Assembly (NCBI GenBank): GCA_965644315.1
Contig: CBFFRQ010000038.1
Span: forward strand, 293,178-357,177
DNA from: Caecitellus pseudoparvulus
Taxonomy: Eukaryota > Protista > Bigyra: Bicosoecida
Direction of reading: 5' to 3'
Length of the DNA stretch: 64,000 nt
The position numbers were made by a program, and so were the translations under genes. The notes beneath the pieces are model-generated. The model saw only the letters and a program-made list of their open reading frames with translations, did no database searches and was not told where the DNA came from. Positions 2,869 through 63,972 of this stretch are shown here, piece after piece; within the stretch, counting starts at the first letter, position 1; each line of letters opens with the position of its first letter.

Positions 2869-5800
2869 ATGCCGCCGAAAGCCTCCAAGCGCAGGGGCTT
2901 GCCCGCCGCCAGCGCCTCGGACGCCTTCGCACAGCTGGCAAAGGGAGGGCCACTGAAGCTGAAATCTCGTCCATCCTTCCCACAGCTGCCGTCGGCCGCT
3001 TTGAGCGCTGCATCCTACGATGAGGGGGAGGGGGCAGCTGCAAAATCCGCTGCTGCCAACGGTCCCAGGCAAGCGACTCCTGCAGCAGGGTCGCCACGCG
3101 GAAAGGGCGAGAAAACTGCCAAGCCAAGCACTGCATCAAAGACGCCAGCTGCCGCACGACGGTCGGGATCAGCTGCGTTGGGCGAAGGCCGGGCACGCTC
3201 CGTTAGCGCCAGCGGGGTTGCAAGGGCCATGCCTGGAACACCCGCTTCGCCAACGACCAAGACACAGAGCAGGGGATCTGCGGCGAAGAAGTCCAGCTCA
3301 ACAGTGGATATTTCGCCTAAAGCGCTCAAGGCGGCTCTTGCAGCGGTGCAGGCCCTGTATTCCTCCGGCACTGTGAGCGGGGAAGTGCTGGCGCTGGCGC
3401 TGGGCCACTGGCTCGCTGCGGTGCAGAGCGGCGAAAGTGCGGCTGGCACCGCAGCGGCCGGGCACTTCTCCATCGCAGGTGGCGGCGAGGGGGCAGTTTC
3501 CAAGGTGTGTTTGGGGGATGCCCCCCTGCGCATGGTGCTGCAGCTGGCGCAGGCCGTGGCAGGTGCGGAGTTTGACCTGCACGGTCGTGATGGCGTTGCC
3601 GTTGAGGCCGACACTGCGCGAGCACAGGCTGGCCCGGCGGCCAAGCGAGCCCGGAACACCTCGGCAAGCTCTGCCAGCTCCACGCCCCCCTCCCAGCGCC
3701 GTGTGCGTTTCTGCACGTTTGACCTGTCTGTGCCCGACGCCACCGCCCGTGACGTGGGCACAGCGCACTACATTCTGCCGTACACTGAGCCAGCTGCCCC
3801 CAGCACGGCAGAGGAGCTGTTCACCATTGGCGGCAAGTTGGTGCAGCCGCCAGTGGCAGAGGCGCAGGGCGCCACGCTGCCGCCCGGAGCAACTGCCCCT
3901 GCTGTGACTCCCACGGACTCGGGGCAATCTGTGCCGGGAGTCACTGGCGCATGTGGCGTGCCCAAGCAGCACCCCTTGAAACGGCCCATGTCCAAGCGCC
4001 CCCCACGGTGGGCCAGCTCAGTGCCCTCAGATGCCTTGGCAGCACTGCCTGTGCCACCAGGTGCTGCGGCCGCCTATGCAGAAAGCACGCTGGTGCACTG
4101 CCCCAGTGTGCCAGGTGGGCCCACTCGCCGTGCTGCGGCAGGGGCAGTGCCCGCTACACCTACCTCCTTTATGCTGCCACCTCCAGTGGCCTCCACCTGC
4201 CCCATCGTCCTGCGTCACCCGCAAGAGCGCCTTGCAGTGGCGTTGCACGGGGTGATGGAGTGCGCTGCGCCGCTGCGCTCAGGCTTGGAGGGCCGTGGGC
4301 GGAGTGCTGCCACGCAAGCATGCCACGCAGTGGTGCGTGCAGTGCACGACACACTGGCTGCATGGGGACTGGAGCCCCCTGTGTCTGTCGGCAGTGCGGA
4401 GCGTGCTGCATCTCGGCGCAGCGCGAAACGCCCTCGTGCACAGGCAGCCCAATCGGGGCCCCTGCACCGCCGGCTAGCTGCCTCCACGTTCAAATCCGCT
4501 GCTCAGACTCTGGCACGAGAAATTAGCACCCTCTTTGTGCCTCGACATGCGACTGTCTCGAGTGGGCCGTGGCAGGTGACTGACGTGGCGCCTGCGCCGC
4601 TGTTGCTGCCGTTTCAGCAGCGGTACACGGAAGTCATCAGCTCGCTGTTCCGACACACCTTGCGGCGTGCTTTCAACGGACAGGTGTGGGAAGACGAGTC
4701 TCCCTTCATGCAGCTGCACATGGCGTTGTTGCGGGAGGAGGGCGGTGTGGACGGGGAGGAAGAGGAGACGGGTGGCAGTGGTGACGAGGAGTTCGTGCCA
4801 GACGGCAACGCAGCAGGCGCTGACGCAGCCTCCACCACCGGCCTGCCTGACTCCACCCATGCAGCTGCCGATTCGTCCGCTGCTACGAGTGACGCCGAGG
4901 CGCAGGTGGTGGATTTGGAGGAGGCTTCCCCAGAGGCCATGGCTGCCATGGCGCAGGTGGAGGCTGCCTGGCTGGCCAGCGTGGCTCCAGATGAGCCCGG
5001 CGCCAGCGCAGAGGATGAGGGGAAGAGCGTGGCGTCGGCCACCAGTGCCATGTCCGCTGCGTCGCGGGCCAAGGTGCCTGGGGCTGGCTCTGGCGTGGGT
5101 GTGGGGGGGGGTGCCACGGAGGATGGCTCCTACCTCAGCATAGCGGATGGGGAGGTGTTGAAGTACAACAGCGATGACTTGGCGGCGCTGGTGTACAGGG
5201 CGCTGCTGCAGCTGCACTGGGGGCGCTCCGTCTTGCTGCGCATGATCCACCCCCACACGCTGCTGCCCAGCACGGGGGAGGGCGAGGGGGGGTCAGCCCC
5301 CCCTCCCGGAGGCAGTGGAGGGTCGGCCTCCGCCCTCACTCTGCAGCAGTGCGTGGACCGGGCCCCCGTTCAGGACCTGGCCACGGCGTACGAGTTCTGC
5401 GTGGGGCACATGTTCCTGCAGGAGTTGCTGACGGCGCCCAGTGTCATCGCGGCAGTGGAGGGGGGGGGCGACGCATGGACCACCCTGCAGCGTCTGGGTG
5501 CGCATGTCATTGCCTGGGGTTTGGTGGAGGAGGGGCATGCTGGCGCCTTTGCAGACCTGCTGGCGCTGGGCAGGCAGTTGTCAGCAGAGGAGGAGACGGT
5601 GCGGGAGGTGCTGGCGTGTGTGGCGCCCACCCTCACGCGGCACCACCGGGCTCTCGCGCGAGCCCGAGCAAATTCCGCATCTCGCCGGCGCAAGGGCTCA
5701 GCCCGTGGCGGCAAGTCCTCTGCCCGGGCCTCCATGGCGGCTTCCAACTGGTCCCTCGCTGCCATGCCCAGTGCCAGCGACTCGCCGGGTCAGGGTGTGG

Positions 5801-29341: not shown

Positions 29342-30181
29342 TCTGTGCGTGCTTGATCAGACTAGGCAAGCTCCCAGAGTCCAATGCAAAGTTTACCAGG
29401 GTGAGAGTGTGTCGTGCGAGTTGGCGTGTCGCGCCCGCAAGTCGCTCTGGCTCGCCAGCCAGCCCACTCCCCCCGCAAAGCAGCTTAAGTGGTAGCAACG
29501 TCCCGGAAAAACGGATACAGACAGCATTCTGGTGTACTGTTTGACCCAATCGGGGAGCGGGGGTAGAGAGGGAGTCCGCTCTTGCGACGCGTTTGATGCT
29601 CTCCACTTGCGTCGGTGCCCGCAGGATGCAACGGATCCGGTAGAGGGTAATTTTCATTTTCTGTACAACAAATTATGAAGAATTGTTTGGGGAGGAGCAC
29701 ACGCATGCGCTCTCCTACATTTCAGCGCAGGCACTCTCTCGCAGTCTCTCGCCTGCGACGTGGAGTGCTGCGGATTTCGACCAGCCTTTCCCAACTCTGT
29801 GTCTCGGCACGCGAGCGTGCGTCTGGATTGAGCGTGGACGCTTTCAGCAAATTGGTTGGTTTTTGTGTGGGTTACGGCCCAGTGATCTGAGCCCTGCTTT
29901 TCCTGTGTGTGTGGCGCCTGTCTTTGCGCCTCCCTGCCTGCGGGCCGAATGGCGTGGCCCAACGCGCCTTGCTCAGCTGCTCGGCACTCAGCTGTCTCCT
30001 GGTGTGCTTGCACAGTGAATTCGAAGAAAACCACTGCAGTTTGCTCAAACCTGTCGGCACACGTTCATCGGCCGCCCATAAAGTCACGACTAGGGGCTGG
30101 ACATCTCCGCGGCGTTTCACGGCAGTCTGCGCACCCTCACAGCAGCCCACTGCTCGCCTCCGACATCACTGCATGCTCAGA

Positions 30182-33100
30182 ATGGCCTTTACTCAGGCAT
30201 GTCACCAGAGAAGACGGTGCTTTGCGTTTTGGCCCAACAGCGTGCGCCAGAAGCGTGTATCGAGGCCAGCTGCAACCTCGCGGCCAGGTACAACGCGACA
30301 CGGGCTTACGCTGTACACGCTCACCACTGTGGTGGTGGCTCTCGCTGCACTGGAGTGTGGGGCGACGACCCCATATCCCGATTGGATGCAGAGTGATGGG
30401 CCTTACTTCTCCTCGTTTGCAAACGCTGCCCATGGGCACGGCAGCAGCCTGCTTGTGTTGCCGGACATGGACGGCAACGGCCGCGTGGACATGGCGTTCG
30501 GCTCCCCGCTGAAGGGAGATGATGGAAGCTTCTCCGTTGTTTTTGCCTATACTGGGTCCCTTCCTGCATATGTGCAGGCACAGCGGAGTGAGTTCATCGC
30601 CCCAGGGCTCGCGCCTGGCCACACGGGCCGGTTTGGATCAGCTCTCGAGTACCTCGGGGACGTGCACCAAGACGGCATGTACGGCCTTGCTGTTTCCGCA
30701 CCACTCCTTAGCGATGGCACGGTCTTCATGCTCAAATTTGATGCGGTTGCCAAGTCCATCCTCCTCGTCGCAACTCTGGCAGGGTCTGATGCGTCTGGCG
30801 GGCTTGAAGTGGCGCGGTTCGGCAGCGCCATCTGCTCGCTTGGCGACTTGAACGCAGACGGCGTGGTGGACCTCGCCTTTGGTGCCGTAGCTACAGGTGG
30901 CTTTAAGGGGGGTATTATCACGGGCACGATGAACTCCACGCTGGACGGTTTTTCATCCAGCTCGGAGACGTTCGCTTCCGAAGAGCCGGCGCTGGACGGG
31001 GTCATGTTGGCAGATGGAGGGTGGTTTGGAGCGTCATGTGCTGCAGCAGGAACGCACATTCCAGGATCGGGCTCATCCAGCACTTGGACCACTGGCTCGG
31101 AGGGGTCCCTCGGCATTTGGCTTGCTGTCGGGCAGCCGGCAGTGTCACAGGGCAAGGTTTGGATGATCGCGCTGGATGAGACTGCCTCCCGGGACTTCAG
31201 CAAGCCCATCCGAGTGCTAGAGCTGGCAGGCGCGCCGGCCTCCGGGGTTGGCTCGTCCATTCTCTGCATTGGGGATGTTGTCGGTTTAGACGGTATCCCA
31301 GAGCTTCTGGTGGGCCGGCCTGACCTTGGGTCATATGGCGCTGTGCTGGTGGCTCACGTGAACCAAACGCGACACTTACAAGCAGCCCCGGCATTCAATG
31401 CCGGTGGGTATCAAATGGGGGGGTATGGGGACCATGCCAGCTCGGGTGACGGGTTCGGCTCAGCCATCGCTGCCGTGCAGGACACGTCCGTCGATGTCAA
31501 GCTCAGCATATTGGTGGGCGCACCCAGTGATAATTTGAATGCCGGATTCCACCATGTGATTACTAAGTTCTCCATCGCGTCCCTGGACACCTGTCGACCG
31601 CCCATCGCCGAAGTCTTTTCCTTGGTGAACTCCACTGTCGCCGCTTCCGACTCAACATCCTTTCAAGCATCGTCCGTGTCAGATATGCAAGTCGGCGCAT
31701 CAATCGCCACGGCTGCAGACTTTGACAAGAATGGAGCTGAGGAGTTGTTGCTGGGAAGTCAAAACGAAGCGGGAGCCGGTGAAGTGTGGTTGCTGTTCAT
31801 GGGGGATGCAACATCTGTCTCATCTGTCGTTCGTCTCAGCCATGGAACACAAGGAAGCAGCAACTTCCCCGCCATTCCCAGTGTTTCTGAGAAAGGCCTC
31901 GCAGTTGAATATGTTGGACACGTCCCGGGGGCCCAAAGCAGCCACGCCATGGCTGTTGGCTTCCCGGAGCGTGATGCCGCCGGAAAGACCGCGCTCGGGA
32001 CCGTGTACTTGGTCTCATTGAACCCTGCCGGAGGTGCTATCGGTTTTGACGAGTGGATGCCGGGCACCGGAAGCTTTGGGCATGTGCCTGTTTCAACGGA
32101 GAACACTTTCTTCGGAGCTTCTTTGGCCCGCCTTCCAGACCTGAACCCCGGCACAGGGCTTGGAGGCGGCGTTCCTGAGCTTGCCATAGGAGCTCCAGGA
32201 CACGACACAGGGTCAGGCATGGTTGTACTGGCTTTCATTGAAAGCGCAACTGCTGGGGCGCATTCGACAGCGTTGCTGTATCAAGGATCACCACATGTTC
32301 TGGATGGGTCGTATTCGCTAGAGGGTGCCTTTGGTTCCTCCATTGCATACCTTGGATTGCCGGAGACGCCTTCGGTCAGCGCTCCGACTTTCATCCTTGC
32401 GGTTGGTGCACCTGAAGGTAGTGAAGGGTCGGGCGCAGTGTACATCCTGGAGGTAACGGTGATTGGCCTCTTAGTCGGTTCCAGTCAAGTGACAGGTTCA
32501 TTGCAAGGCATGCCGCAGGACTGGGCCGGCCCACACTCGTTGGGGTCTGCAGTGGCGCACGCAGGGGACTTGAACGAAGATGGCATCCCCGACCTGTGGA
32601 TTGGTGATCGCGAGGCAGGTTCTATCTACCTCTTGGCCTGGGATGGGTATGAGAACGTGCTCTCCTTGGAGGCGTTTAACCACACGTATCCCCTGCTCAA
32701 CATTGGGAACCTGCCATGGGACGGCGGCTTTGGGTCAAGCCTGGCAGTCTTCCCGGGCCTGCACCCGGGACACACCTTGCTCCTCGCCGGCCTCCCGCAT
32801 GCAGATGTTGGCGGAAGCTCCGATGCCGGCGATGTGCTTTTTGTGAACTTGGAGGTCAGCGCATACTCAAACCATTCCCAGCTCCAGACGAGCGACTTTT
32901 TGACCGCGACTCGCATTGCTGCGGGCACCAGAGGATACAACGCAAGTGCTGTAAGCTTCGGTACCTTTGGCTCGTCGATGCACGGAATCGGCGACATCAA
33001 CGGCGATGGGGTTCTTGACATTGCAGTCGGCACGCCAGGAGACACCTCCTACAGCGGGTCTGCCGTGGGAAGCGTCGCCTTGCTGTGTTTGGGGCCCGAT

Positions 33101-36100
33101 AGCGATGTCGTTGCCATGTATACGTTGCACCCGGCCAACTTCAGTGCCCCTGCTTCCTCTGGACTTCGTTTTGGAAGGGCGGTGTTAGCGTTTGCAGACC
33201 TGAACGACGACGGCAGCATGGACCTTGCAGTTGGGACAGCGGGGAGTGTTTCTGACCATGGCGGTGTGTACATTCTCTTTCTTGGAAGCATGGGTTCCGT
33301 GCTGTCCTTCAATGACTTTGGCCCTGGAGACTTTTCCATCAATACGAACTTCTACCCGGATCCAGATATCGGTGCGAGTTTCACACCCTCGTGTCATCAT
33401 GGACAGAATGGCTTGCCCGCCCTTGTGATTGGTGCCCCTGGGTACAACTACGATGATGGTGCAGTCATCATCGCCAACTTGACCGTGTCTGCAACAGTAG
33501 ACTCGCCTGCACTCCTGCACAAACAAACCCCTGGCCTGACGAGTGTTGACTCAAATGTTCGCTTCGGGGCTTCGCTGGCAACACTTTCGGATGCCAACGA
33601 TGGGCGGGCCACCTTCGCTGTGGGTGCGCCTCATGCAGACTCTTCCTACGGAAAAGTGTACCTCGTCGAAGTTGACAAGGTTTTTGGAGTATCGCTGAAG
33701 AGCACCATTTCCACAGCATCGCCAGGCATTCCCTCATCGTCCGGCCCTGCCGGCCTTGGCGTGAGCCTGGCAGCTGTGCGGGCTTCGCAAGGTGCCGCCA
33801 TCGCAGACCTTCTCGTTGGTGCCCCGATGCTGGGGTTGGACGAGTACGGGTCAAGCGACATTGGCTCCTTGCTGCGTGTGAAGCTGGACGTGTCCGGCAG
33901 CGTGCAACACGTGAAGCAAAGCACAGTACTTCCTGTCAGCGATGCGACCATGCGTTTTTCTTCTTCCATCGCAGTTCTCCCGCGCTTGCGGGGAGCAGGA
34001 CTGGGTGCTTCTGTCCTCGTTGGTGCCCCAGGCGACGAGCAAGACGGACAGAGCGCGGCAGGATCCATTTTTGTTCTTGACACTGACCTGGCCTTGAACC
34101 CGCCTCCACCACTTTGCGGTGGAATCAACGACGACATGGTGAATCAACATGGTGTGCTACAGCCCGGCATGCCTCGTGCACCCGCACCAGCTGAGGAGTC
34201 TTTCGGCTCAGGCATTGCTTGGGTTGGAGACTTGAACGAAGATGGAACACCCGATCTCGCAGTCGGCGCAAGTGGTGGTGGTTCCAACGGAGGGGCTGTG
34301 TACATCCTGCTCCTCCAAACACGCATACCCACCGTGGCGTCGTTTGTCGAGCTGGATGCAGTCCAAATCGGCGTGTCAGGTGGTTCCTCGTCTGGCATCG
34401 GCCAAGGCCTTGCGTTTCTTGGCGATGCTGGGGGCGAGTGGGAGTCCAAGCTCGCCATCGGGGTGCCTACACATGATGATATTGGCTTCTTGCAAGTTGT
34501 AGAGCTCACCGCATCAGGCTCTGTGGCTTGGACAAAGCGGGTTTCGCCGCTTGCGCCAACTGAGCCAAACGCGATCACAGAGGGAGACATTTTCATTGCA
34601 TACTATGGAACGTCCCTTGCAACAGCCCCAGATCTGAATGGCGACGGACACCCTGAGCTGGTTGCCGGGATGCCTGGCTTCCACAATGCGGGCGGGTCTG
34701 GCGGCATTGTGTTGACTTTTTTCGGCACTGGGGCAAGCACACTGCACCACGTCCACGTGGGACAAGGGCTGCCTGCCACTGAGGGCCTCATGGGGGCCGT
34801 TCCGTTGCTTCGGGGGGGGCTTGGAGAGTCTGTGGCGGTGCTTGACGCCGACCTCACGGCCCGAACACTTCTCGTCGCCGCTGGCGCGCCATACGTGGAC
34901 TCCAAGGGTGCCTTGTACCTGTTCAAGTTTCATGCCTCTGGTGTGCTGCTGAACGTGACCATGATTGGGAGCTCAGTGCTGTACACGCCACCCCATGTGT
35001 CAGCGTTTGTCGCCGCGCACTTGGTGTCGAAGTTCGGGCATTCTCTGGCACCAGCTGGGGATGTGGACGGAGACGGTGCGCAGGACATTTGGGTAGGTTG
35101 CAGCGGGTGGAGCTCAGCAGAGGGGGCCGCCTTTTTGCTCCATCTCGGCCCTGGGGGCGAGCTTCAGAACGTTTCTCGCATTTCCAATCAGACGCAGGGC
35201 TTGGCCGCAGCCGTTTTTGGTGGAGACGAACTCGGCAGCGCACTTGCATCCACCAGCACTTGGACTGGAGGTCGGAACGTGCTTGCGATGGGGGCATCTG
35301 GTGCCTCCATCCAAAGCCCCGACGATGGTCGAGTCTTCTTGGTGGAGCTGAACACTGGTCCTCCCCCAGCCTCCCCAAGCTTTCCCAGTGGCACTGTTCA
35401 GAGCGTGTCCTCCAGGTCATCTGATAATCTTGCAGCCCACTTGCACTTTGGAGCAGCAATGGCTGGCATTGGAGACTTTTATGAGGATGGAAACTCCAAC
35501 TTGGAAGTCGCTGTCGGCTTGCCGGGTTCACCTCATGGAGGCGCCTGCACCACTGGATCGGTGAGCCTTCTCATTATGGATGGAGGAGGCTCAGTATTGA
35601 GTTTTGATAACATTCACGGCTCGAGTCTGTCAGCGCCACCAACAAGCTGTGCAGCTTCTGGCAATACCCCTGCCCTGTTCGGCAGCAGCATCGCAGCCAT
35701 CCACAATTTGCGAGGGGATGGCTCCACTGTGCTCGCTGTCGGCAGCCCTGGGATGCACTTCTCCAGCAAGGCAGGTGCAGGGGCCTTGTTTCTTATTCCG
35801 GCGTTTCAACGGGCCCAGTCTACGCGCATCACGTGGGATGATGTAGGCAGCGGCCTGCTTGCGGGCCAGGGAGCTCCACACCTCGGTGCATCTGTCGGTG
35901 CGCTGTGCGACTGCTCAGCTGATGAAGTCCCGGATGTCATGGTCGGGGCACCAGGTTTTCAAGTTCAGTCCAGCTCTCCTGATGGGGCCGTGTTCTTCCT
36001 GGCTTTGCACTCCAACGGATCAGTCCGGCACACGCAAGCTGTGCTGCACCGAGGGATGCCAGGGCTCTCGCAGCTTCCTGCGGGAGCTCGATTCGGCGCT

Positions 36101-39100
36101 TCCCTTGCTCTGGTTGAGCGCAGCGTTGATGCAAACTCCGCCCTCGTGGCTGTCGGCGCGCCCCATTCTTTGGCAGGGGCCGGCATGGTGTTTCTGATCG
36201 AGATGACCCTTGCAGGCAGCGTGACACAGGTTGCTGAGGTGTCTAGGTACCACGCACAGTTCAGCAGTGCTGTTCTGGGATCGCTGAGTCCAGGCCCAAG
36301 CGCCGCGTTCGGGTCGGCGTTGGCAGCGGGAGACGTCAACAGCGATGGCATCATGGACCTGCTCATTGGAGCAGAGAACGCCACTTCGGCTGTTTCAAGC
36401 AATAAAACCGGCGCCATGTATGTTTTCAGGCGGGGTCCAGCCCAGCAGGCTGCGGAGCGCGTCATGTGGCCGTTCACCGCTTCGCTTGGCGACGGCGATC
36501 GCCTCGGGTCCGCGTTTGCCTTCTTTGACAACTCTACCATAGCTGCGGGCGCATTGCTCGCAGTGGGTTTGCCGGGAAGGGACTCCCTTGAGTATGAGAA
36601 CGAGGGGGTCGTGCTCATGGCTCACACCTCCTTGGATGGTCCGGGACAGATTCCAGCGACCTGCGAACCAGGCATTCCTCAGGTGTCTTCCTTCCCTGAG
36701 GTGATGCACGCGAGCATCATCAGCAATGGGAGTGGCATAGATCCCGCAACCTTCCCCGATTGGTCCACCGGTGACAGGCTTGGTTGTTCTGTTGCATCGC
36801 TCGGAGACCTGGACAGAAATGGAGTGCCAGACATCGTCATGGGGCTGAAGGGCCACTCTGAGTCAGCGTCATCAGCTGGCGCAGTGTGGATTATGTTCAT
36901 GGACAACGCCGGGCGGGTAAGCTCTTCCGTGCTATTGAACAGCGACACTGTCGGCTTTCCCACGCTGCCGGCAAACTCAAACTTTGGCTGGAGTGTGGCT
37001 CTCTTCAGGAAACCGACGATGTTAAATCCTTTGGAGATCCTTGTGGGAGCGCCTGGCCAGAACGGAGGCAAGGGTGCAGTGTACTGGTTGCAATTGACCA
37101 ACGCAGGCGGCATCGCGAACTTCGAACAGTTTGGTAACTTGGACGCACTTGCCCATGACCTTGGCTCAGGTGCGGCGTTTGGTCGCTCAGTGGCCGCATT
37201 GCAAGATCTCAACAATGATGGACTGCCCGATTTCGCTGCTGGTGCTCCACTGGATGATGGGGACGATGGGTCAGTCCGGATTGTGTTTACTCGCGGGCGT
37301 GGCGAGATGAAGTTCTTCACGACTATCAGCAGCACGTCTGATGCCTTCCACGTAGCGCCAGGGCCACTCCTTGCACCAGGCAGTGGCACTAAGTTTGGCT
37401 CTGCTCTTGCGCCTTTGGTTGACTACAGCTCGGGCGGGCACACCGCCCTTGCAGTCGGTGTTCCTGCCCTTGACGTTCGAGGCGGCGTGTGGATCCTCGA
37501 GCTTGACGTGGATGGGTCTGTTCGGAACCAAAGCTTGATCCGGGCCCTGCATCACTTGCCTTCGAACCTTCAAACATACATTTCGGAGTGGGGCGCATCC
37601 CTTGCCCCAAGCGCCAAGCTTGATGTCACTGACTCCACTCCAGACCTGTGGGTCGGTTCCCCTGGCATGGTGGACCCATGGACTGGCGTGGCCGCAGGCG
37701 GTGTGTTTGGCATTACTTTCAACGCTCCGCAAGGCACGACCATACCTGCCGAGCAGTGGCTGAATCCTTCTGTGCAGTGGATCAACACAACGCAATTCGA
37801 GCTGTCCGGGCACCCACCCACCCAAGCTGGTCGACTTGGGTCGTCCATGGCAGCCCTGACGCCAGCCTTCTCGGGAGCCCCTGGTCGCACGGGGCTGTTA
37901 GTTGGGGCAGCCAAGCTGACTCCCGTCGGCCAAGGTACATGGGGTGGTGCGTACGTCTTGGAGACAACGCTGCCTGGTCGTCCCATCTCGGAGAACCCGC
38001 CCACAGCAAACGGTCCAGCCCCACTGGTGCACAGCTCGTTTGAGACTTCATACGGTGTCCTGGGTGTGGGGGCAAGGTTCGGCTCATCCATGGCTATGAT
38101 CTCCGAGAATGCGACTGTTGCGCTGGTGGCTGTTGGAGCGCCTGAGACGCAACTTATGGGAACGGGACGAGCTGGAGCGGTGCTGTTCTACCAGTATAGT
38201 GAAGGCGCTTTGAGCACCCCGCGCATGAAGGGGCTGCGAGACTTCATGCCATCAGCCACTCTGAATTCCGACCAACACTTTGGGGCCGCTGTGTCCTCAG
38301 CTGGGGATGTGAACCGTGATGGCGTGGTGGACTTGGCTGTTGGGATGCCTGGGTGGGCAGGCAACAAAGGAGCTGTGGTTATCGTTCCCCTGGCTGGTGA
38401 CTTCTCTGGAAAGGAAGTGGCAAGCGCTGTTACTATGCTGCGAGATGGCTTGAACGGGTTTTCGTCTCCGGCAGGGGCAGGGCCTGCCCCGAGGCTTGGC
38501 TCGAGCCTTGCCAATGGCGCCACGCAGCCCATCACACGGTTCACGACACTTTTCATTGGCGCGCCAGGTGGGGGTTCTGGTCAAGGGCATGTGGAGGCTG
38601 TGTTGCTTGCTGTCGATGGGCATGCAGCTGCACAGGCCACCGTTGCCATCGAGAACGAGAGTGACTCCGGATTCGGCTTGGCCATTGCGTACCTGGGGCC
38701 TGCCACTGGAGTGCAGGGCAAGTCCATGCTTGCGATTGGAGCCCCAGAAGAAGACGGCCGGGGCCTGGTCCACGTTTTCACGATATTTGATTCTTGGCCT
38801 TTGGCTCCACAGCTGTGGACCACGGTGAGCCAGCCAGTGACTCAAGCAGGCGTTCCCCACTCATACGGTTCCCGCTTTGGCGCAAGCTTGCACCTCTATG
38901 GAGACACCAATGAAGATGGCATCCCTGACATGTTCGTTGGAGCACCAGGTGCGGGGCTGAACCAGGAAGGTGCGCTGTTTGCGCTGCAGCTGTCCAATTC
39001 GACCCCTCCAACGAACGTGCTCGATTGGGTTGTGCTTTCTGAGACTCGTGGGGGTCTGCACCAGAATATCAAGCCGTCTTCCTTCTTGGGGTCTGCGGTG

Positions 39101-42100
39101 CTGCCCCTGAGGTACTCGCCATCCCCCTCTGGAGACATGCGCTTGTTGGTAGGCGTGCCGGGAAGGGGAAACTCGGGCTCCGTTCTGCAGGTGGTGTCGA
39201 CCCTGGAAGCCACACGTGAGATGGCACGTAAGCCCGAGCCGCTACCTGCAGCAAGGTTTCTGATGCCTTTTTCAACCCCAGGCTTGGTGCAAGTGGGGGA
39301 CGAGTTTGCCCGCTCTGCTATAGGCCTTCGCCGCAGTGACACGCACACCCACCTCGTGATTGGGTCGCCTGGAGCTGCCGCCGGTGCGGGCCGTGTTTGG
39401 CTTTCTTCAGCTCCCACCACGAGTGCCGGTGCGTCTGGCCTCTTCATTCACCTTGACCCTGAAAATGGGACGACGCCGGAGTTTGCGCTGTTCCCCGTCC
39501 AGCGCTTTGGCAGCGCACTGTGCGGTGCAGGGGACTTGACTGGCGATGGCAGCGACGAGCTCGTTGTCGGCAGTCCAGGCGAAGCGAGTGGGACTTCGAT
39601 GGGGCTGTTGCTGGTGCTGGACCTCGCCGCTCCGAGTGAGCGCAAGGGTTTGGCCGGCATTGCGGCAACTGAGCTGAGCGGAGGCATGGCCGGAACGGAG
39701 TTTGGCTTTGCATTGGCGTCCAGCTGTCGCAGCAACAGTGGCGCCGCTGCTTTAGTTTTCGCGGGTGCGCCGTGTGGGCCGAAATCCTCCTGTACAGGCT
39801 CAGTTTTTGCGTTGTTCCTAAATGCTACAGGCTGGCGGGAATCACACGCTGAGCTACCTGGAAGCACCTTTGGTTTCAGTGCTAGTGCAAGGTTTGGCTC
39901 CAGCATTGCTGTGCTGTCAGCGTCACTGGAGGATGGACACACGCTAGCCATTGGTGCACCAGGCGCAGATTCTGGCGACGGAGATATCGCTCTCGTCACG
40001 TATTCTCCACTCTCCGAGGAATCTCGTCTCATCAGCCGCTTGCGATCTGCCGGCCAAGCTGGGTTCATGACTCCAGTTCCGCAGGGCTACGGCTTCGGTC
40101 AAGTGCTGGCGAGCGCTGGAGACGTGATGGGAGACGGCATGGCGGACCTGGTGATTGGCATGCCTGGCGAGTTGGCCAGTGGCTTCACCGGACCTGGAGG
40201 GCTGCTACTGGCTTTTTTGGCGCCTGACGGCAACGTAAGCCACACGACAGCCCTTGGACCCACGGCAGGTGGGCTGACTGTACAGCAAGCCGCAGGGGGC
40301 TTGGGCGGCGCGCTTGCAGGCTGGCCATACAAGATTCCTGGGGAAGTGGTGCTGGTGGTCGGTGCTCCACAGCAGGCCGGAACTGGCAAGGCGTTCCACC
40401 TCCGCCTGCGAAGCCACACGGCGGTGAACCGCTCCACCTGCGCCGTTGATTGCCCAGGTGCCGGGTCGGGGTTCTGCCACCCTCCTGCGCTGAACAGCAC
40501 AGGGCAGAACCGTTCCACGCCCGTGCAAGAACCTTCGCCATCCCCCACAGCCTCCGCGACCCCTTCATCTTCCACATCCCCTGCCCAAATATCTGCCACT
40601 GCAACATCCAGTGCTTCACCGAGTGTGAGTGGATCCCCATCTGCTACAGTGTCCGGGGTAACTACCTCCCCGACAAGCAGCCCGCCTGGCAGCCCAGGGC
40701 AGGCGCCCTCTCCCTCAGGAGCTGCCCCGTCCACCACGCCCAGCCCAAGCCCCTCTGCCCTCCCTCCCTCTACTTGCGAGTCACAGTGGTGGGCAGTGTG
40801 TGTGTCGGGACGCGGACCTGCCCAGCCAGGCGCGAGTGCCTCACCATCCCCCGCTGCCGCCTCTAGCACTGCTGTCTCGAGGCTAGCTGTGTTGCCTGGC
40901 GCATGGTGCGATGGCTGCACCTCTGCAGCCCACTTGTTCCTGGCCAGCACCCAGTCGCAGTTCGGTGGCGTGCATGTGTGCCCTCGCTTCGGTGCCTGCG
41001 AGAGCGGCGGGGAGGGTGGCTCTCAGCTGCGGTGTGCGGCGGGCCACGTTGGGGCAGCCTGTGCAGGCTGCAAAGCAGGGCATGCGCCTCCAAACGGCTC
41101 ACCTTGCGCCCCTTGCGAATCCTGCCCCGAGACAGATGCAGTGTTCAGCGCTGGCCTGGCGGTGTTCGTAGTTGCGGCCACGATCGGCTTCGTCGTGCTG
41201 TCTGTGCGCGGTGTACAGCTGCGAGGCCAACTGACGCAGGACCTGCTCATCGGCTCTGCCCGCATGTTGCTGGGGTACATTGCGCTGATGGGGTATGTGA
41301 CCATGGCCCTCTCTCCGTTCACGGAGAACACCCTCGGCCTCGGGTCTCGCGCCGTCACCCGTGAGCAGTGGTACGAAGCGTGTGGCAGGGGCCAGGGGAG
41401 GCACTTGCAGCAAGTCTCACCTCTGGCTGGCTCGCTGCAAGCGTCGGCGGGCAACGCTTCATCGTCCCCGTGGGTGTCTGACGCTGCCTTGTACAGCCCT
41501 GAGCCGCCTGCTTCCGCTGGCAGCAAGTTCGCGTGGGTGAGCGACGCGTTCCGCTTCGCCGCATCCCTGACCGGCGCCCTTCCGCCGTCCAGCATTCCTG
41601 CCGCCAGCTGTGCGTTGGGGCACACCGCCTTTGCCACCCAAGTCCGGGCCATGTTCGGTCTGGCCGGCGTCGTGCTGGTCGGCATCGCGGTGGTGTTCGG
41701 AGTGCTGGAGCTGGGCTTCGCGAAGCCGGGGGCCCCTAAGCCCGTGCGGCCCAGCGCAGCCAAACCCCGATCACTGACTGCGAACCCGCTGCTGCTCTCC
41801 ACCGCAAAGTCGACGAAGAAGAGCCGGGCAGGCGAGGGGCCTTCGAAGGGCTCCGGGGCGCCTGGTGGCTCAGGCAGCCTTGCAACAGCCCAGCTGGTGC
41901 TGTGGACACTGCTTCGTTTCCTGCTGTCGGTGTACTTGCTGGCTTGGGGGGCAGTGGTGGCAGCATCCATGCAGGTACTGGCACCGGCATGGGCGCTTCC
42001 ATCGGGCACCTATGCCTTCCCGACCTCCCTGGCAGTAGACATTTCAGAGACTGGGGACTTGACTGTCGTGGCATGGCTGAGCCTGATCCTGCACGCAGTG

Positions 42101-43381
42101 GTCGTGCCCTTCCTCGCGGTGCTGGTGCTGAGGGCGCGGGCGGCTGCCCTCCTGCACGAGGACCACCACACCAGTGCCACTCTCGCCGTGATGACGGCTG
42201 GGTACAGACTGCAGCTGTCTCCGCGCCAGGCGCGGCAAGTCACCAAGCGCACCCTGGCAGCCAGCGGCAGCGGCGCGTCAAATTCTGCCCAGCAAGCAGT
42301 TGCTGTCGCGCTGTCAGTGCGCATGAGTCGGCGCATGGAGCAGCGGTGCTGCGGCGTAGCCAAGTTCGTCCCCAGCCACGCCTTTGCGGTGCTGCGCCTG
42401 CTGCAAAATGCCATTGTGCTGAGTTGCCTGTGGCTGACCACGAACATGGTCGTGCGCAGTGTGGTGATGGGGCTGGCCGTGTCCACGCTGCTGCTGCTGA
42501 CATACTCCCTCCGCCCCTACTCCCTGCCCGCCCACAACACCCAAGACATGCAAGTCAGCGTTACAGTGCTGCTGCATGTCATCCTGCTGTCGGCATTCCC
42601 CGGGGACGCCACCGTCGCCATCCTGCTTCTGACAGTGCACTGTCTGACGGCAGGGTCGATCCTGTGGAGCATTCTGCGAGGGGCGTCATCCTACGTGCGG
42701 TCTTTCAGCGCCACTGTGCGCAAGCAGATACACACGTTGCTGCCAGAGGTGGCTGTTGCACAAGGTGCGGCACAGGATGCGGAGGGCGTGGCAGCTTCCG
42801 CGCTGCCTTCTGCCAGCCTTGTGTGCCAGGCGCTGCTGTCCCGAGCGGGGTGCACCTGGTGCAAGCCTCGCCCGGCGTCGACGCACCCGCTGCGCAGTGG
42901 CACACAGCAGTGGGCGGATCTGCCCCAAGTGGCCAGCTCTGTCCTGGCCACCGCGAACGCCAGCTCCAAGCAGGATGTGGCAGCAGCGCTGGAAGCAGAG
43001 TCGGACGGAATCTTTGGCTCCGCCCCTCGCCTGGCTTGCCCTTGCGGGTCGGGCAGGGTGACATCGTCTGGGGTGGAGGACGAGGCGCTGGCGCTGGCTG
43101 TGCGTCAGGCGGTTGGTAGTGGCGCTCTGGGCAGCAGCGGCTCACTGCGAAAACCCGCCGCTGGCAGTGTGCTGGCTACGCTCACCAACGCGAGGAGCTC
43201 ACGCCGACTGCTCCTGCCTGCCACGCGCTCCAAGAGCATAGCTAGCTCCAAGAGCATGGGGCGTGTAGCCTTTGACAGCATGGTGCTGTCAGCTGCAGGC
43301 GGGGGGGAGGGCAGTGGGCCCAGCACTGGCACGTTCCAGCCCCAGCGCACCCGAAGTCGGAGCAAGCGCCTGCTGCCGTGA
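30182..43381 (+). CDS. Giant (~4400 aa) intronless membrane protein: 48 FG-GAP blades + Ser/Pro/Thr stalk + Cys-rich module + ~9-TM domain + cytoplasmic tail
   Basis: Single 13.2-kb ORF. Hydrophobic leader LTLYTLTTVVVALAALECGA, repeated FG.S....D.N.DG..D..VGAP motifs, CAAGHVGAACAGCKAGH, then a run of hydrophobic helices. Start codon uncertain (30173 or 30182). Confidence 0.88.
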   Translation: MAFTQACHQRRRCFAFWPNSVRQKRVSRPAATSRPGTTRHGLTLYTLTTVVVALAALECGATTPYPDWMQSDGPYFSSFANAAHGHGSSLLVLPDMDGNGRVDMAFGSPLKGDDGSFSVVFAYTGSLPAYVQAQRSEFIAPGLAPGHTGRFGSALEYLGDVHQDGMYGLAVSAPLLSDGTVFMLKFDAVAKSILLVATLAGSDASGGLEVARFGSAICSLGDLNADGVVDLAFGAVATGGFKGGIITGTMNSTLDGFSSSSETFASEEPALDGVMLADGGWFGASCAAAGTHIPGSGSSSTWTTGSEGSLGIWLAVGQPAVSQGKVWMIALDETASRDFSKPIRVLELAGAPASGVGSSILCIGDVVGLDGIPELLVGRPDLGSYGAVLVAHVNQTRHLQAAPAFNAGGYQMGGYGDHASSGDGFGSAIAAVQDTSVDVKLSILVGAPSDNLNAGFHHVITKFSIASLDTCRPPIAEVFSLVNSTVAASDSTSFQASSVSDMQVGASIATAADFDKNGAEELLLGSQNEAGAGEVWLLFMGDATSVSSVVRLSHGTQGSSNFPAIPSVSEKGLAVEYVGHVPGAQSSHAMAVGFPERDAAGKTALGTVYLVSLNPAGGAIGFDEWMPGTGSFGHVPVSTENTFFGASLARLPDLNPGTGLGGGVPELAIGAPGHDTGSGMVVLAFIESATAGAHSTALLYQGSPHVLDGSYSLEGAFGSSIAYLGLPETPSVSAPTFILAVGAPEGSEGSGAVYILEVTVIGLLVGSSQVTGSLQGMPQDWAGPHSLGSAVAHAGDLNEDGIPDLWIGDREAGSIYLLAWDGYENVLSLEAFNHTYPLLNIGNLPWDGGFGSSLAVFPGLHPGHTLLLAGLPHADVGGSSDAGDVLFVNLEVSAYSNHSQLQTSDFLTATRIAAGTRGYNASAVSFGTFGSSMHGIGDINGDGVLDIAVGTPGDTSYSGSAVGSVALLCLGPDSDVVAMYTLHPANFSAPASSGLRFGRAVLAFADLNDDGSMDLAVGTAGSVSDHGGVYILFLGSMGSVLSFNDFGPGDFSINTNFYPDPDIGASFTPSCHHGQNGLPALVIGAPGYNYDDGAVIIANLTVSATVDSPALLHKQTPGLTSVDSNVRFGASLATLSDANDGRATFAVGAPHADSSYGKVYLVEVDKVFGVSLKSTISTASPGIPSSSGPAGLGVSLAAVRASQGAAIADLLVGAPMLGLDEYGSSDIGSLLRVKLDVSGSVQHVKQSTVLPVSDATMRFSSSIAVLPRLRGAGLGASVLVGAPGDEQDGQSAAGSIFVLDTDLALNPPPPLCGGINDDMVNQHGVLQPGMPRAPAPAEESFGSGIAWVGDLNEDGTPDLAVGASGGGSNGGAVYILLLQTRIPTVASFVELDAVQIGVSGGSSSGIGQGLAFLGDAGGEWESKLAIGVPTHDDIGFLQVVELTASGSVAWTKRVSPLAPTEPNAITEGDIFIAYYGTSLATAPDLNGDGHPELVAGMPGFHNAGGSGGIVLTFFGTGASTLHHVHVGQGLPATEGLMGAVPLLRGGLGESVAVLDADLTARTLLVAAGAPYVDSKGALYLFKFHASGVLLNVTMIGSSVLYTPPHVSAFVAAHLVSKFGHSLAPAGDVDGDGAQDIWVGCSGWSSAEGAAFLLHLGPGGELQNVSRISNQTQGLAAAVFGGDELGSALASTSTWTGGRNVLAMGASGASIQSPDDGRVFLVELNTGPPPASPSFPSGTVQSVSSRSSDNLAAHLHFGAAMAGIGDFYEDGNSNLEVAVGLPGSPHGGACTTGSVSLLIMDGGGSVLSFDNIHGSSLSAPPTSCAASGNTPALFGSSIAAIHNLRGDGSTVLAVGSPGMHFSSKAGAGALFLIPAFQRAQSTRITWDDVGSGLLAGQGAPHLGASVGALCDCSADEVPDVMVGAPGFQVQSSSPDGAVFFLALHSNGSVRHTQAVLHRGMPGLSQLPAGARFGASLALVERSVDANSALVAVGAPHSLAGAGMVFLIEMTLAGSVTQVAEVSRYHAQFSSAVLGSLSPGPSAAFGSALAAGDVNSDGIMDLLIGAENATSAVSSNKTGAMYVFRRGPAQQAAERVMWPFTASLGDGDRLGSAFAFFDNSTIAAGALLAVGLPGRDSLEYENEGVVLMAHTSLDGPGQIPATCEPGIPQVSSFPEVMHASIISNGSGIDPATFPDWSTGDRLGCSVASLGDLDRNGVPDIVMGLKGHSESASSAGAVWIMFMDNAGRVSSSVLLNSDTVGFPTLPANSNFGWSVALFRKPTMLNPLEILVGAPGQNGGKGAVYWLQLTNAGGIANFEQFGNLDALAHDLGSGAAFGRSVAALQDLNNDGLPDFAAGAPLDDGDDGSVRIVFTRGRGEMKFFTTISSTSDAFHVAPGPLLAPGSGTKFGSALAPLVDYSSGGHTALAVGVPALDVRGGVWILELDVDGSVRNQSLIRALHHLPSNLQTYISEWGASLAPSAKLDVTDSTPDLWVGSPGMVDPWTGVAAGGVFGITFNAPQGTTIPAEQWLNPSVQWINTTQFELSGHPPTQAGRLGSSMAALTPAFSGAPGRTGLLVGAAKLTPVGQGTWGGAYVLETTLPGRPISENPPTANGPAPLVHSSFETSYGVLGVGARFGSSMAMISENATVALVAVGAPETQLMGTGRAGAVLFYQYSEGALSTPRMKGLRDFMPSATLNSDQHFGAAVSSAGDVNRDGVVDLAVGMPGWAGNKGAVVIVPLAGDFSGKEVASAVTMLRDGLNGFSSPAGAGPAPRLGSSLANGATQPITRFTTLFIGAPGGGSGQGHVEAVLLAVDGHAAAQATVAIENESDSGFGLAIAYLGPATGVQGKSMLAIGAPEEDGRGLVHVFTIFDSWPLAPQLWTTVSQPVTQAGVPHSYGSRFGASLHLYGDTNEDGIPDMFVGAPGAGLNQEGALFALQLSNSTPPTNVLDWVVLSETRGGLHQNIKPSSFLGSAVLPLRYSPSPSGDMRLLVGVPGRGNSGSVLQVVSTLEATREMARKPEPLPAARFLMPFSTPGLVQVGDEFARSAIGLRRSDTHTHLVIGSPGAAAGAGRVWLSSAPTTSAGASGLFIHLDPENGTTPEFALFPVQRFGSALCGAGDLTGDGSDELVVGSPGEASGTSMGLLLVLDLAAPSERKGLAGIAATELSGGMAGTEFGFALASSCRSNSGAAALVFAGAPCGPKSSCTGSVFALFLNATGWRESHAELPGSTFGFSASARFGSSIAVLSASLEDGHTLAIGAPGADSGDGDIALVTYSPLSEESRLISRLRSAGQAGFMTPVPQGYGFGQVLASAGDVMGDGMADLVIGMPGELASGFTGPGGLLLAFLAPDGNVSHTTALGPTAGGLTVQQAAGGLGGALAGWPYKIPGEVVLVVGAPQQAGTGKAFHLRLRSHTAVNRSTCAVDCPGAGSGFCHPPALNSTGQNRSTPVQEPSPSPTASATPSSSTSPAQISATATSSASPSVSGSPSATVSGVTTSPTSSPPGSPGQAPSPSGAAPSTTPSPSPSALPPSTCESQWWAVCVSGRGPAQPGASASPSPAAASSTAVSRLAVLPGAWCDGCTSAAHLFLASTQSQFGGVHVCPRFGACESGGEGGSQLRCAAGHVGAACAGCKAGHAPPNGSPCAPCESCPETDAVFSAGLAVFVVAATIGFVVLSVRGVQLRGQLTQDLLIGSARMLLGYIALMGYVTMALSPFTENTLGLGSRAVTREQWYEACGRGQGRHLQQVSPLAGSLQASAGNASSSPWVSDAALYSPEPPASAGSKFAWVSDAFRFAASLTGALPPSSIPAASCALGHTAFATQVRAMFGLAGVVLVGIAVVFGVLELGFAKPGAPKPVRPSAAKPRSLTANPLLLSTAKSTKKSRAGEGPSKGSGAPGGSGSLATAQLVLWTLLRFLLSVYLLAWGAVVAASMQVLAPAWALPSGTYAFPTSLAVDISETGDLTVVAWLSLILHAVVVPFLAVLVLRARAAALLHEDHHTSATLAVMTAGYRLQLSPRQARQVTKRTLAASGSGASNSAQQAVAVALSVRMSRRMEQRCCGVAKFVPSHAFAVLRLLQNAIVLSCLWLTTNMVVRSVVMGLAVSTLLLLTYSLRPYSLPAHNTQDMQVSVTVLLHVILLSAFPGDATVAILLLTVHCLTAGSILWSILRGASSYVRSFSATVRKQIHTLLPEVAVAQGAAQDAEGVAASALPSASLVCQALLSRAGCTWCKPRPASTHPLRSGTQQWADLPQVASSVLATANASSKQDVAAALEAESDGIFGSAPRLACPCGSGRVTSSGVEDEALALAVRQAVGSGALGSSGSLRKPAAGSVLATLTNARSSRRLLLPATRSKSIASSKSMGRVAFDSMVLSAAGGGEGSGPSTGTFQPQRTRSRSKRLLP
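30430..40410 (+). repeat. Protein-level tandem array: 8 units of ~1250 bp, each with 6 FG-GAP blades
   Basis: Manual count of FG..GAP motifs. Units are separated by Pro-rich linkers near 31600, 32870, 34110, 35370, 36665, 37980 and 39230. DNA-level identity is eroded. Confidence 0.8.
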
Positions 43382-61550: not shown

Positions 61551-63379
61551 TTATTGACTGCCAACAGAGTCACCTTCCCAGTCACTCCCTTCATCACCTT
61601 CGCCGGCAGCCCCAGGCTGTTCAGGTGCTTGCAGGTGCAGAAGGGCTAGCTCTTCAACTCTCTCGCGGCACCACTGGGCAGTGCCCACCATGATGGAGCG
61701 ATACTGAACCCCAGCATACTTGAAGATGGTGTGGGTGGAAGCTGGCCAAGCGCCAGCTCCAGCACTTGCGTCTTCCATCCCATGGCACTCGGCATACTCC
61801 ATGAAGGGGGCTGCGCCTCAAGCAAGTCCTCTACCACCTTTGCCGTTGCTTCTTCCAGCAGGTCACCCCAGACAGTCCCCGGCGCTGTCACATCAAGGGC
61901 ATGCCACACAGATGCCCGCAATGGCAGAGCTCGCAGTACAAAGTTATGCAGTGCTACAGCTACACGTAGACGCAGTGCAACTGCTGCTGGCCCAAGGTTT
62001 CCATTCGCAGTGTTGTTCAAGATGCGGAACCTGTTCTTGAGCTCTCCAAATGCACATTCTACCTTAACTCGAATGTGCAAAAGTGCATCGTGGAAAATTG
62101 TCACCAAATGATTCGGCTGCACCACATCAGTGTCCCGCTGGTCGAACGGAAGAAGTAAGAATGTGTACCCCGGACGAAATCCCGAGTCTGCTGCCAATGT
62201 ATATGGGAGTGGACAAGGACGTAAGCTTGGGTTCCCGACCATTGCCGCAAACATGGGAGACCTTATGAGCTTCCCCCGATCGCTTTCGGCACCAGCATAC
62301 CCAATGTCTGCTTGCCAGAAGAGTCCGTGGCCACTTACCATGCACTGGGCACTAACCGAAGCCACGCCATCCTTGTTTATGTATACGCCCTTTCCACTAT
62401 CTTCACTGATGTAAGCACGCACATGTGTATCATCCACGCTGCCTGCTACGCACGGCAGCTGCATGCCTGACAGGGCAAAGTTCAATCGTACACTCTCCAT
62501 CCACTCCCCAGAATCTGGTGCTGGCATGTACACCTGCTGTTCAAACATGCTGGATGAGATAGACCGCAAGAAAACCTTTAGGATTCGACTGCATGTGGAC
62601 TTCGATGCCCCAGTGAACGCTTCTTGTCCAGCTCTCATGTTGAAACCCTTGCACATATAATGCACTCCAAGGCAACAAGCCTCCAGCCAACTGAAAGTGC
62701 ATCCTTGGCCGCAGAATGATGAGTCCACAGCACCCCACCAGTCTGCCACTGATGGCTGTTGCTGCACCATGGGACGCTCGCATGCCCCAAGGCGACTGCA
62801 GTGCTCGTGCAGACAGTCTTCCCTGTGGCGCCGAAGCTGTCTCTGCCAGGTCCTGTGCTCTTGTGAGTCTGGTTCCTCTGCAGGTTCATCACCTGCAAGC
62901 TCCACAGCGTGGGCCTCTACTTCCACGGGTAGGATCGAATGCATGACCCACCTGTACCAGAGTTTTGGTGCAGAAGATTTCATGAACCACACCGATAGAG
63001 CTAAAATAGTGTTCACACCAACAGAGCACAACTGCTTCATAGTATACTGCAACACCGTATGTGGGGTTGTGCAAACCTCGTGCTCTTCGAGAGGCACTCC
63101 ATGTTGCCGTGCCACCCACGTCCTCACACCGGATGCCAAACCTGCAAGAGGATTGGTGCGGCCACGTGCGCTGGCCCTCACGCCCTCCTCCAGAGCACAG
63201 TCTTCATCGAAGCACGGTAGTGGCACGGCCTGCTCGTGTCCATCTTCATCGGCCATTGCTACCACTGCCAGCAACAGTGCTGCTTCTGTGGCAATAAGTG
63301 CTTGGAGCGCTTGCAACCTACGGACATGCTGCCGCCGGCGCAACAGTAAAAAGGAAACCAGGAATTGCATGCCAGACAT
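61551..63379 (-). CDS. Harbinger transposase (DDE_Tnp_4/HARBI1-like), with a probable 1-nt frameshift at 61806-61810
   Basis: HTH F..SKST.SRI; GSVDDTHV (D), YINKDG..S...Q, GAESD, LAADSGF (D), RVKVECAFGELKNRFRIL (E), LHNF. As sequenced the frame stops at 61646; the alternative frame ends at 61551. Confidence 0.9.
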
Positions 63380-63972
63380 GGTTGTATGATCTGTGCAAGA
63401 CAATACGGGGAGTCTTTTCTCACAGTGCCTTGTTCGGCCTGTCTCAACCAAGACTCATTTCGATTTCCGCGAAACTCGCCTTGCGGGAAGTGCAAGCCTT
63501 CGAGGTGAAAATTGTGAATTGCAACCCTGGGACGCTGATCGTTTGATCGGTAGTTCGACACTGTGAAAGACACATGGGGGCTGGAGTGCTGGTTGCGCCG
63601 GTGTCGAATGCGGGTTTGTGAGCACCTCGATGACGACGCAGGCCCTCTGTTCGTAATCGACAGACAACTCACCCGAATCGAAAGAGGGTGATCACCAAAA
63701 CGGCCCGATTCCTCGAAATTCGGCCCACACTTCATAAAAATTTGCATTGGATCACGAAAGTGTACGAATACGCGCAAGTAGACTGGAACATAAGACAGCA
63801 GCCTCCTTTTACAAACGTGGGCAAGCAAATTCCGCATCCAGTTTGCATCACAGACCCAACCTTTCAAGCACACTCTGACAAAAATAATGTATGCATTCGT
63901 TATTTTATACTCAGTACATTATCACATACAACTATCGCCAACATGCCCTCCTGACAAGCTCAAAAACGAACC

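Follow-up and report, generated by a model that had tools for sequence, protein, structure and literature searches.

Introduction

The membrane family PF06011 (TRP), which includes Flc1–3 of Saccharomyces cerevisiae and Pkd2 of Schizosaccharomyces pombe, and the TRP_C proteins of protists and algae, which bear Cys-rich ectodomains of the Ephrin_rec_like or DUF7630 kind, share a layout of about nine helices with an N-terminal domain outside the cell and a tail inside. The PF06011/DUF7630 membrane module occurs widely among protists and algae and in some animals; to our knowledge it has no solved structure, and we know of almost no functional data outside fungi. In S. pombe Pkd2, whose N-terminus lies outside and C-terminus inside, Ca2+ permeates reconstituted membranes on stretch (PMC9727806). 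Here we analyze a giant gene of 13 kb from the GC-rich flagellate protist Caecitellus pseudoparvulus, located at positions 30182–43381 (plus strand) of a 64,000-nucleotide stretch (the window; contig C38:293178–357177) of a 30.6-Mb draft assembly in 215 contigs; positions below refer to the window unless a contig is named. It is a domain-shuffled representative of a membrane-module superfamily that has been catalogued but is functionally unexplored, and it counts among several paralogs with FG-GAP repeats. With a probability of about 0.6, its product is a giant surface receptor in which eight propellers are carried on a stalk, a neck, and a divergent nine-helix bundle of the Flc/Pkd2 superfamily.

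Two further systems come close in architecture. DGF-1 of Trypanosoma cruzi consists of β-helix ribs, a hat domain, and 7–9 helices (bioRxiv 10.64898/2026.07.27.741050), and alveolate CRMPs, with nine helices, have been proposed as contact sensors that trigger exocytosis (PMC9670195). The Caecitellus giant resembles DGF-1 in having a giant ectodomain of tandem modules, a small domain above the membrane, a multi-helix C-terminus, and a large paralogous family; however, the ribs of DGF-1 are β-helices whereas those of the giant are propellers, the membrane parts match in shape with a template modeling score (TM-score) of 0.41/0.46, and the likeness is one of shape and layout. The DGF-1_C profile (PF11040) has no match in the genome. 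Going by their description, CRMPs share with the giant a large adhesive ectodomain, an EGFR-like Cys-rich region, and nine C-terminal helices; the genome has no match to alveolin (PF12314). In polycystin-1 and the adhesion G-protein-coupled receptors (GPCRs), too, a multipass signaling or channel module carries an ectodomain that is giant, modular, and adhesive, but the parallel is an analogy only: no relation in fold or sequence to the module of the giant was seen, and such chains are absent among its solved-structure matches. A literature search on DUF7630 returned nothing, and one that combined FG-GAP, TRP, multipass, and protist returned nothing relevant.

Results

FG-GAP Propeller Array

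The frame at 30182–43381 translates into 4,399 codons without a stop, so that the single intronless open reading frame (ORF) with a leader given in a preliminary description of this DNA was recovered intact. Most of it is taken up by 48 FG-GAP repeats arranged as eight units of six (30437–40441, plus strand; aa 86–3420), the units starting at nucleotides 30437, 31694, 32966, 34202, 35447, 36779, 38078, and 39293. Pfam matched the full protein to PF01839 (FG-GAP; E 9.9e-65, 13 stretches) and PF13517 (FG-GAP_3; E 8.9e-30) and to no other family at E ≤ 1. A hidden Markov model iterated on the protein itself recognized 47 repeats, with one more in a double-length gap of 134 aa near aa 1409, reproducing the 48 blades counted previously; the many blades that had been credited with DxD/NxDG loops include 14 in which the complete Ca2+ loop, D-x-[DN]-x-[DN]-G-x-x-[DE], is present. 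Within a unit, these 14 fall mainly on blades 1, 3, and 5, and in the proposed structure about every other blade would have a loop that binds Ca2+.

The grouping by six is apparent in the sequence. Similarity between repeats is maximal at lags of 6, 12, 18, and 24 (z = 6.5 for period 6, z = −1.4 for period 7), the observed excess at period 6 was attained in 0 of 5000 shuffles within the odd and even repeat classes, and the linker after the sixth repeat of a unit is longer than the others (mean 76 vs. 68 aa). Repeats 13–24 were modeled with AlphaFold on an alignment of five rows (predicted local distance difference test, pLDDT, 63; predicted template modeling score, pTM, 0.52), the alignment having been kept to this depth because phmmer searches of the paralogs with a 15-blade segment returned fragments only. 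Structural alignment divides this model into residues 1–374 and 402–823, and each half overlays near-completely on six-bladed propellers, namely Bacillus phytase (3amr; Z 25.9, 301 of 352 residues), sialidase Neu2 (313 of 347 residues), and an NHL domain. When the whole model was searched with Foldseek, the best solved matches were integrin α propellers (E 1e-12), the heads of which overlay the model halves on six of their seven blades only (chain residues 94–438). Given the superpositions and the sequence period, the twelve modeled repeats would form two six-bladed propellers and the entire array eight.

The preliminary description had called the array integrin-α-like, a term that fits the FG-GAP repeats and their DxDxDG Ca2+ loops but not the six-bladed units, which differ from the single seven-bladed head of integrin α. 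Integrin α furthermore possesses thigh and calf domains (Integrin_alpha2, PF08441), which Pfam did not detect in the giant at E ≤ 1, and it has one membrane helix followed by GFFKR, whereas the giant has nine helices and no GFF[KR]R motif was found. A six-frame search of the 30.6-Mb draft assembly for integrin β (PF00362) gave no match at E ≤ 0.01, a result that in a draft assembly is not proof of absence; the control searches were silent as well. Identity as an integrin α is ruled out by the six-blade period, the lack of thigh and calf domains, the nine helices, and the absence of any integrin β found.

Nine-Helix Membrane Module

The membrane module (41135–42685, plus strand; aa 3652–4168) contains nine helices by both hydropathy and AlphaFold, in agreement with the approximately nine hydrophobic helices noted before and well above a count of two or fewer. 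Kyte-Doolittle peaks lie at aa 3657, 3688, 3824, 3910, 3965, 4067, 4089, 4123, and 4143, and the nine long helices of the AlphaFold model (32-row alignment; pLDDT 83.7, pTM 0.83) coincide with them. The transmembrane helices (TM) are, on the plus strand, TM1 at 41135–41218, TM2 at 41231–41308, TM3 at 41621–41719, TM4 at 41873–41980, TM5 at 42053–42136, TM6 at 42374–42436, TM7 at 42446–42508, TM8 at 42527–42595, and TM9 at 42608–42685. With inside and outside assigned from the external position of the N-terminal ectodomain, the loop between TM2 and TM3 (41309–41620), which has a conserved Trp and two conserved Cys and is structured in the AlphaFold model, is predicted to lie outside; the variable, disordered loop between TM3 and TM4 (41720–41872) and a conserved helical insert between TM5 and TM6 (42137–42373; aa 3986–4064; GYRxQLTPxQA...RCCG...P[ST]H) are predicted to lie inside. 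An RPYxLxxxNxxD motif is located between TM7 and TM8.

Across family modules that are 23–45% identical, GYR, RCCG, PSH, RPYxLxELNxLD, and an Arg within TM7 are invariant or nearly so. All five motifs to which attention had been drawn earlier (RMLLGY, SCAL, VVPF, TAGY, and LRPY..HN..D) are present in the translation, at alignment columns that are conserved or invariant. The adjacent Cys pair close to helix 6 in the cytosolic insert could be a site of lipidation or metal binding.

Relation of the Module to PF06011

The TRP_C/Flc-like domain that the preliminary description assigned to this region, with Pfam and Foldseek proposed as checks, is borne out as remote homology and not as a direct family match. 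Pfam gave no match to PF06011 at E ≤ 10, either on the giant or on any of the 32 family modules, and the C-terminal 893 aa of the giant drew only weak matches to VIT_2, DUF7630, and DUF7287. A six-frame PF06011 search of the genome did, however, find matches at the C-terminal ends of other giant frames, in which a Cys module is followed by helices and then by the motifs FLYxGY...WE...RK and [QK]P[FY]....LN.LE. When nine of these comparison modules were examined as proteins, PF06011 matched six (best E 6.8e-10) and DUF7630 eight.

Alignment of the 32-module profile with the PF06011-positive modules in hhalign returned a probability of 99.1% (E 5.6e-19, 415 columns). With the Cys module removed, the probability was 94.6% (E 7e-8) over 199 columns spanning helices 5–9; reversed and column-shuffled controls gave E values of 0.2–0.8. 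TAGY and LRPY..N..D are what pairs with the PF06011 core; the motifs that the giant and the PF06011/TRP_C proteins share in alignment read GY-R and [RKQ]P[YF]....N..[ED]. The subfamily of the giant differs in an insert of about 55 aa (LTPxQA...RCCG...PSH) between GYR and TM6, opposite which the PF06011-positive modules have a gap, and the giant further departs from PF06011/TRP_C proteins in lacking a TRP_N/ML-like domain, its ectodomain being the FG-GAP array.

Searches by shape and by protein language model point the same way. In the ESM Atlas, multipass clusters with DUF7630 or Ephrin_rec_like domains matched the membrane model with TM-scores of 0.53–0.54 (0.54 for clusters bearing DUF7630), a fungal PF06011 cluster with 0.42/0.49 (312 residues; root-mean-square deviation 4.7), and a DGF-1_C cluster with 0.41/0.46; the top cluster of the language-model search, annotated as “TRP C-terminal domain-containing protein,” scored 0.95. 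Solved structures offered no counterpart: the membrane model reached a best Foldseek E value of 0.16 with unrelated proteins, and a wide VIA search against solved structures did not exceed the background expected of helices (best Z 8.3) and listed no chain of a TRP channel, polycystin, or GPCR. A link to animal PKD2 is unsupported, none of the solved TRP or polycystin channels having matched the model. The module thus appears to be a remote relative, by profile comparison, of the superfamily that contains fungal Flc and S. pombe Pkd2 (PF06011).

A Family of Paralogs with Diverse Ectodomains

Far from being unique, the gene of the giant belongs to a large family of paralogs: its module has at least 40 relatives in the genome. 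The closest modules, 44–45% identical, stand at the ends of FG-GAP giants on contigs C34, C44 (two), and C67; a third module lies nearby on C44, and a further copy with 44–45% identity is on C43. The combination of propellers and a multipass domain in a single chain, as first proposed for this locus, is therefore repeated in at least four paralogs (C34, C44 twice, and C67). The three C44 modules form a local cluster within about 36 kb of C44:193000–230000 (193472–195373, plus; 211268–213028, minus; 227684–229438, plus), and two of them sit on FG-GAP giants of 6,750 and 5,093 aa.

DUF7630 has 102 six-frame matches in the genome. Almost every one lies close to the end of a frame of 1,000–8,600 aa, and these frames include further FG-GAP giants (C6, C56, C43, C41, and C78) as well as PF06011-positive genes. 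The Cys-rich neck and the nine helices together are a reusable chassis found under many different ectodomains, which at this locus are FG-GAP propellers. Scores for FG-GAP, PF06011, or DUF7630 are identical on the contig pairs C22/C79, C20/C68, C65/C32, and C13/C40, which are thus probably duplicate haplotigs, and the paralog counts are accordingly upper estimates. The best PF06011 match of the genome (C141:9933–11921) has seven TGA codons and a module copy at C12:22099–22755 has one; these could be broken copies, introns, or sequencing errors.

Among 1.84 billion representative proteins, 32 match the module, some of them near-identical to copies in the genome. Two that carry FG-GAP repeats (P0005 and P0007) are only 38–42% identical to any copy in the genome, so that the fusion of FG-GAP repeats with the module exists in at least one other organism; the long FG-GAP giants found among public proteins, several of them bacterial, had neither PF06011 nor DUF7630. 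A protein encoded on a 275-kb metagenome scaffold (P0033; ENA ERZ23499096 scaffold_33) looks by eye near-identical to the C43 module, and ENA also holds a debranching enzyme (P0038) 97% identical to that of the window; public metagenomes therefore contain this organism or a sister of it.

Leader, Stalk, Neck, and Tail

The frame of the giant remains open in the 5′ direction as far as 29909. Its earliest in-frame ATG is at 30173 (MLRMAF...), and 30182 is the second, three codons later. The leader (30182–30367, plus strand) comprises an Arg-rich stretch of 40 aa and a hydrophobic segment at aa 41–59, which is taken as a signal peptide or signal anchor.

Between the array and the membrane lie a stalk and a neck. 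The stalk (40499–40876, plus strand; aa 3440–3565) is 28% Ser, 12% Thr, and 19% Pro, a total of 59%, a composition that agrees with the mucin-like character ascribed to it earlier, and it is probably O-glycosylated. The neck (40973–41131, plus strand; aa ~3598–3650; CPRxGxC...RCxxGHxGxxCxxCxxG...SPCxxCxxC) directly precedes TM1 and contains the CxxGHxGxxCxxCxxGH module that had been singled out; its eight Cys and its Gly and His positions are invariant across the 32 aligned modules. It is DUF7630-like: the DUF7630 profile (PF24633) matches all 32 family modules at E ≤ 10 (best 4.2e-6), although on the neck of the giant itself it gives E 0.31 and 11.6 bits, below the cut-off of 27. The chain ends in a low-complexity, disordered tail rich in Ser, Ala, and Arg (42686–43381 including the stop codon, plus strand; aa 4169–4399), which has the approximately 230 aa previously estimated and is predicted to be cytoplasmic because the ectodomain is outside and the number of helices is odd.

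Genomic Surroundings

Neighboring genes in the window are of ordinary eukaryotic character and encode two kinesins (one of the KIF9 type), a tubulin-tyrosine-ligase-like protein, a Pif1 helicase, a U-box protein, and a Harbinger-type transposase; the last is an ORF at 61649–63451 (minus strand) with a DDE_Tnp_4/Plant_tran domain (E 8e-13), at the lower-GC end of the window. Short ORFs on the strand opposite 30182–43381 are shadow ORFs, as is usual where coding DNA is rich in GC. GC content at third codon positions (GC3) is 0.58–0.65 through the FG-GAP array vs. 0.755 in the membrane module and tail, and 0.69–0.77 in the neighboring genes. This compositional break inside one frame (30182–43378) could be a trace of repeat turnover or of gene conversion between FG-GAP paralogs.

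Discussion

As a surface receptor, the giant would function from the outside inward. Binding by the propellers, to a ligand, a surface, or a matrix outside the cell, would depend on Ca2+; the rigid Cys neck would couple the ectodomain to helix 1; and the chassis would anchor the protein and pass a binding or pulling event inward. The output could then come either from the conserved cytosolic insert and the tail or from a flux of ions across the bundle, the latter in the way reported for S. pombe Pkd2, which is permeated by Ca2+ when stretch activates it. Ca2+ dependence, prey recognition, channel activity, and mechanosensing are, at this stage, conjectural functions of a protein whose anatomy, family relations, and single open frame are observed.

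Several points weigh against the receptor reading. The true start of the gene is uncertain (ATG 30173 or 30182) and its 5′ end may be incomplete, and that the array and the membrane module are made as one gene product is a conclusion drawn from sequence alone. Confidence in the propeller model is modest (pLDDT 63, five sequences), and closure of the six-blade ring is argued from superpositions on known folds and from the sequence period. In the membrane module, the superfamily link passes through an intermediate family, there being no direct PF06011 match, and it is strongest for TM5–TM9, hhalign giving a probability of 29% for TM1–TM3 alone. Since the module model shares its fold with no solved structure, nothing structural indicates a pore.

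The alternative that survives best, although we consider it unlikely, is that the giant is a structural adhesin or a component of the surface coat and that its nine helices serve only to anchor and sort it. One chassis under many unrelated ectodomains is what a generic anchor would look like, and T. cruzi DGF-1, whose cluster in the atlas is matched by the module (0.41/0.46), joins a giant repeat ectodomain to 7–9 helices with no known signaling (bioRxiv 10.64898/2026.07.27.741050). For anchoring, however, one helix or a glycosylphosphatidylinositol anchor would be enough, and cytosolic motifs and a TM7 Arg that stay near-invariant among modules of 23–45% identity argue for a function beyond it.

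More doubtful still is an adhesion-gated cation channel, as the preliminary description proposed, in which a Ca2+-permeable path across the bundle or an oligomer of it opens when the propellers are pulled or bind a ligand. The module has no direct Pfam match, no solved channel was matched, and no pore was identified; the yeast Flc proteins, themselves members of PF06011, have been assigned other roles, which also counts against a channel. What speaks for one is the remote homology to PF06011, of which S. pombe Pkd2 passes Ca2+ on stretch in reconstituted membranes (PMC9727806), together with the rigid Cys neck that ties the ectodomain straight to TM1. That the array and the membrane module belong to two or more genes, or to an assembly chimera, is scarcely credible: GC3 does jump between the FG-GAP part (about 0.60) and the membrane part (0.755), and the single protein is deduced from DNA alone, but 4,399 codons run without a stop, and single frames with the same order of parts are found again in foreign proteins and, on other contigs, in at least four paralogs.

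The interest of these results lies in the family more than in the single locus at 30182–43381. A bolder and rather improbable extension of the receptor reading would make the chassis a general transducer, used in about a hundred single-chain receptors to convert binding or pulling on very different ectodomains into Ca2+ entry or another intracellular signal, and akin to that of DGF-1 and, perhaps, to that of the CRMPs; if true, the family would be a protist counterpart of polycystin-1 and the adhesion GPCRs, built on the Flc/Pkd2 fold. FG-GAP propellers would be displayed here without sign of an integrin α/β system, which bears on the origins of adhesion machinery outside animals. A genome in which the same module stands under many adhesion domains offers, moreover, a tractable set of natural chimeras with which to ask whether the module anchors, signals, or conducts ions.

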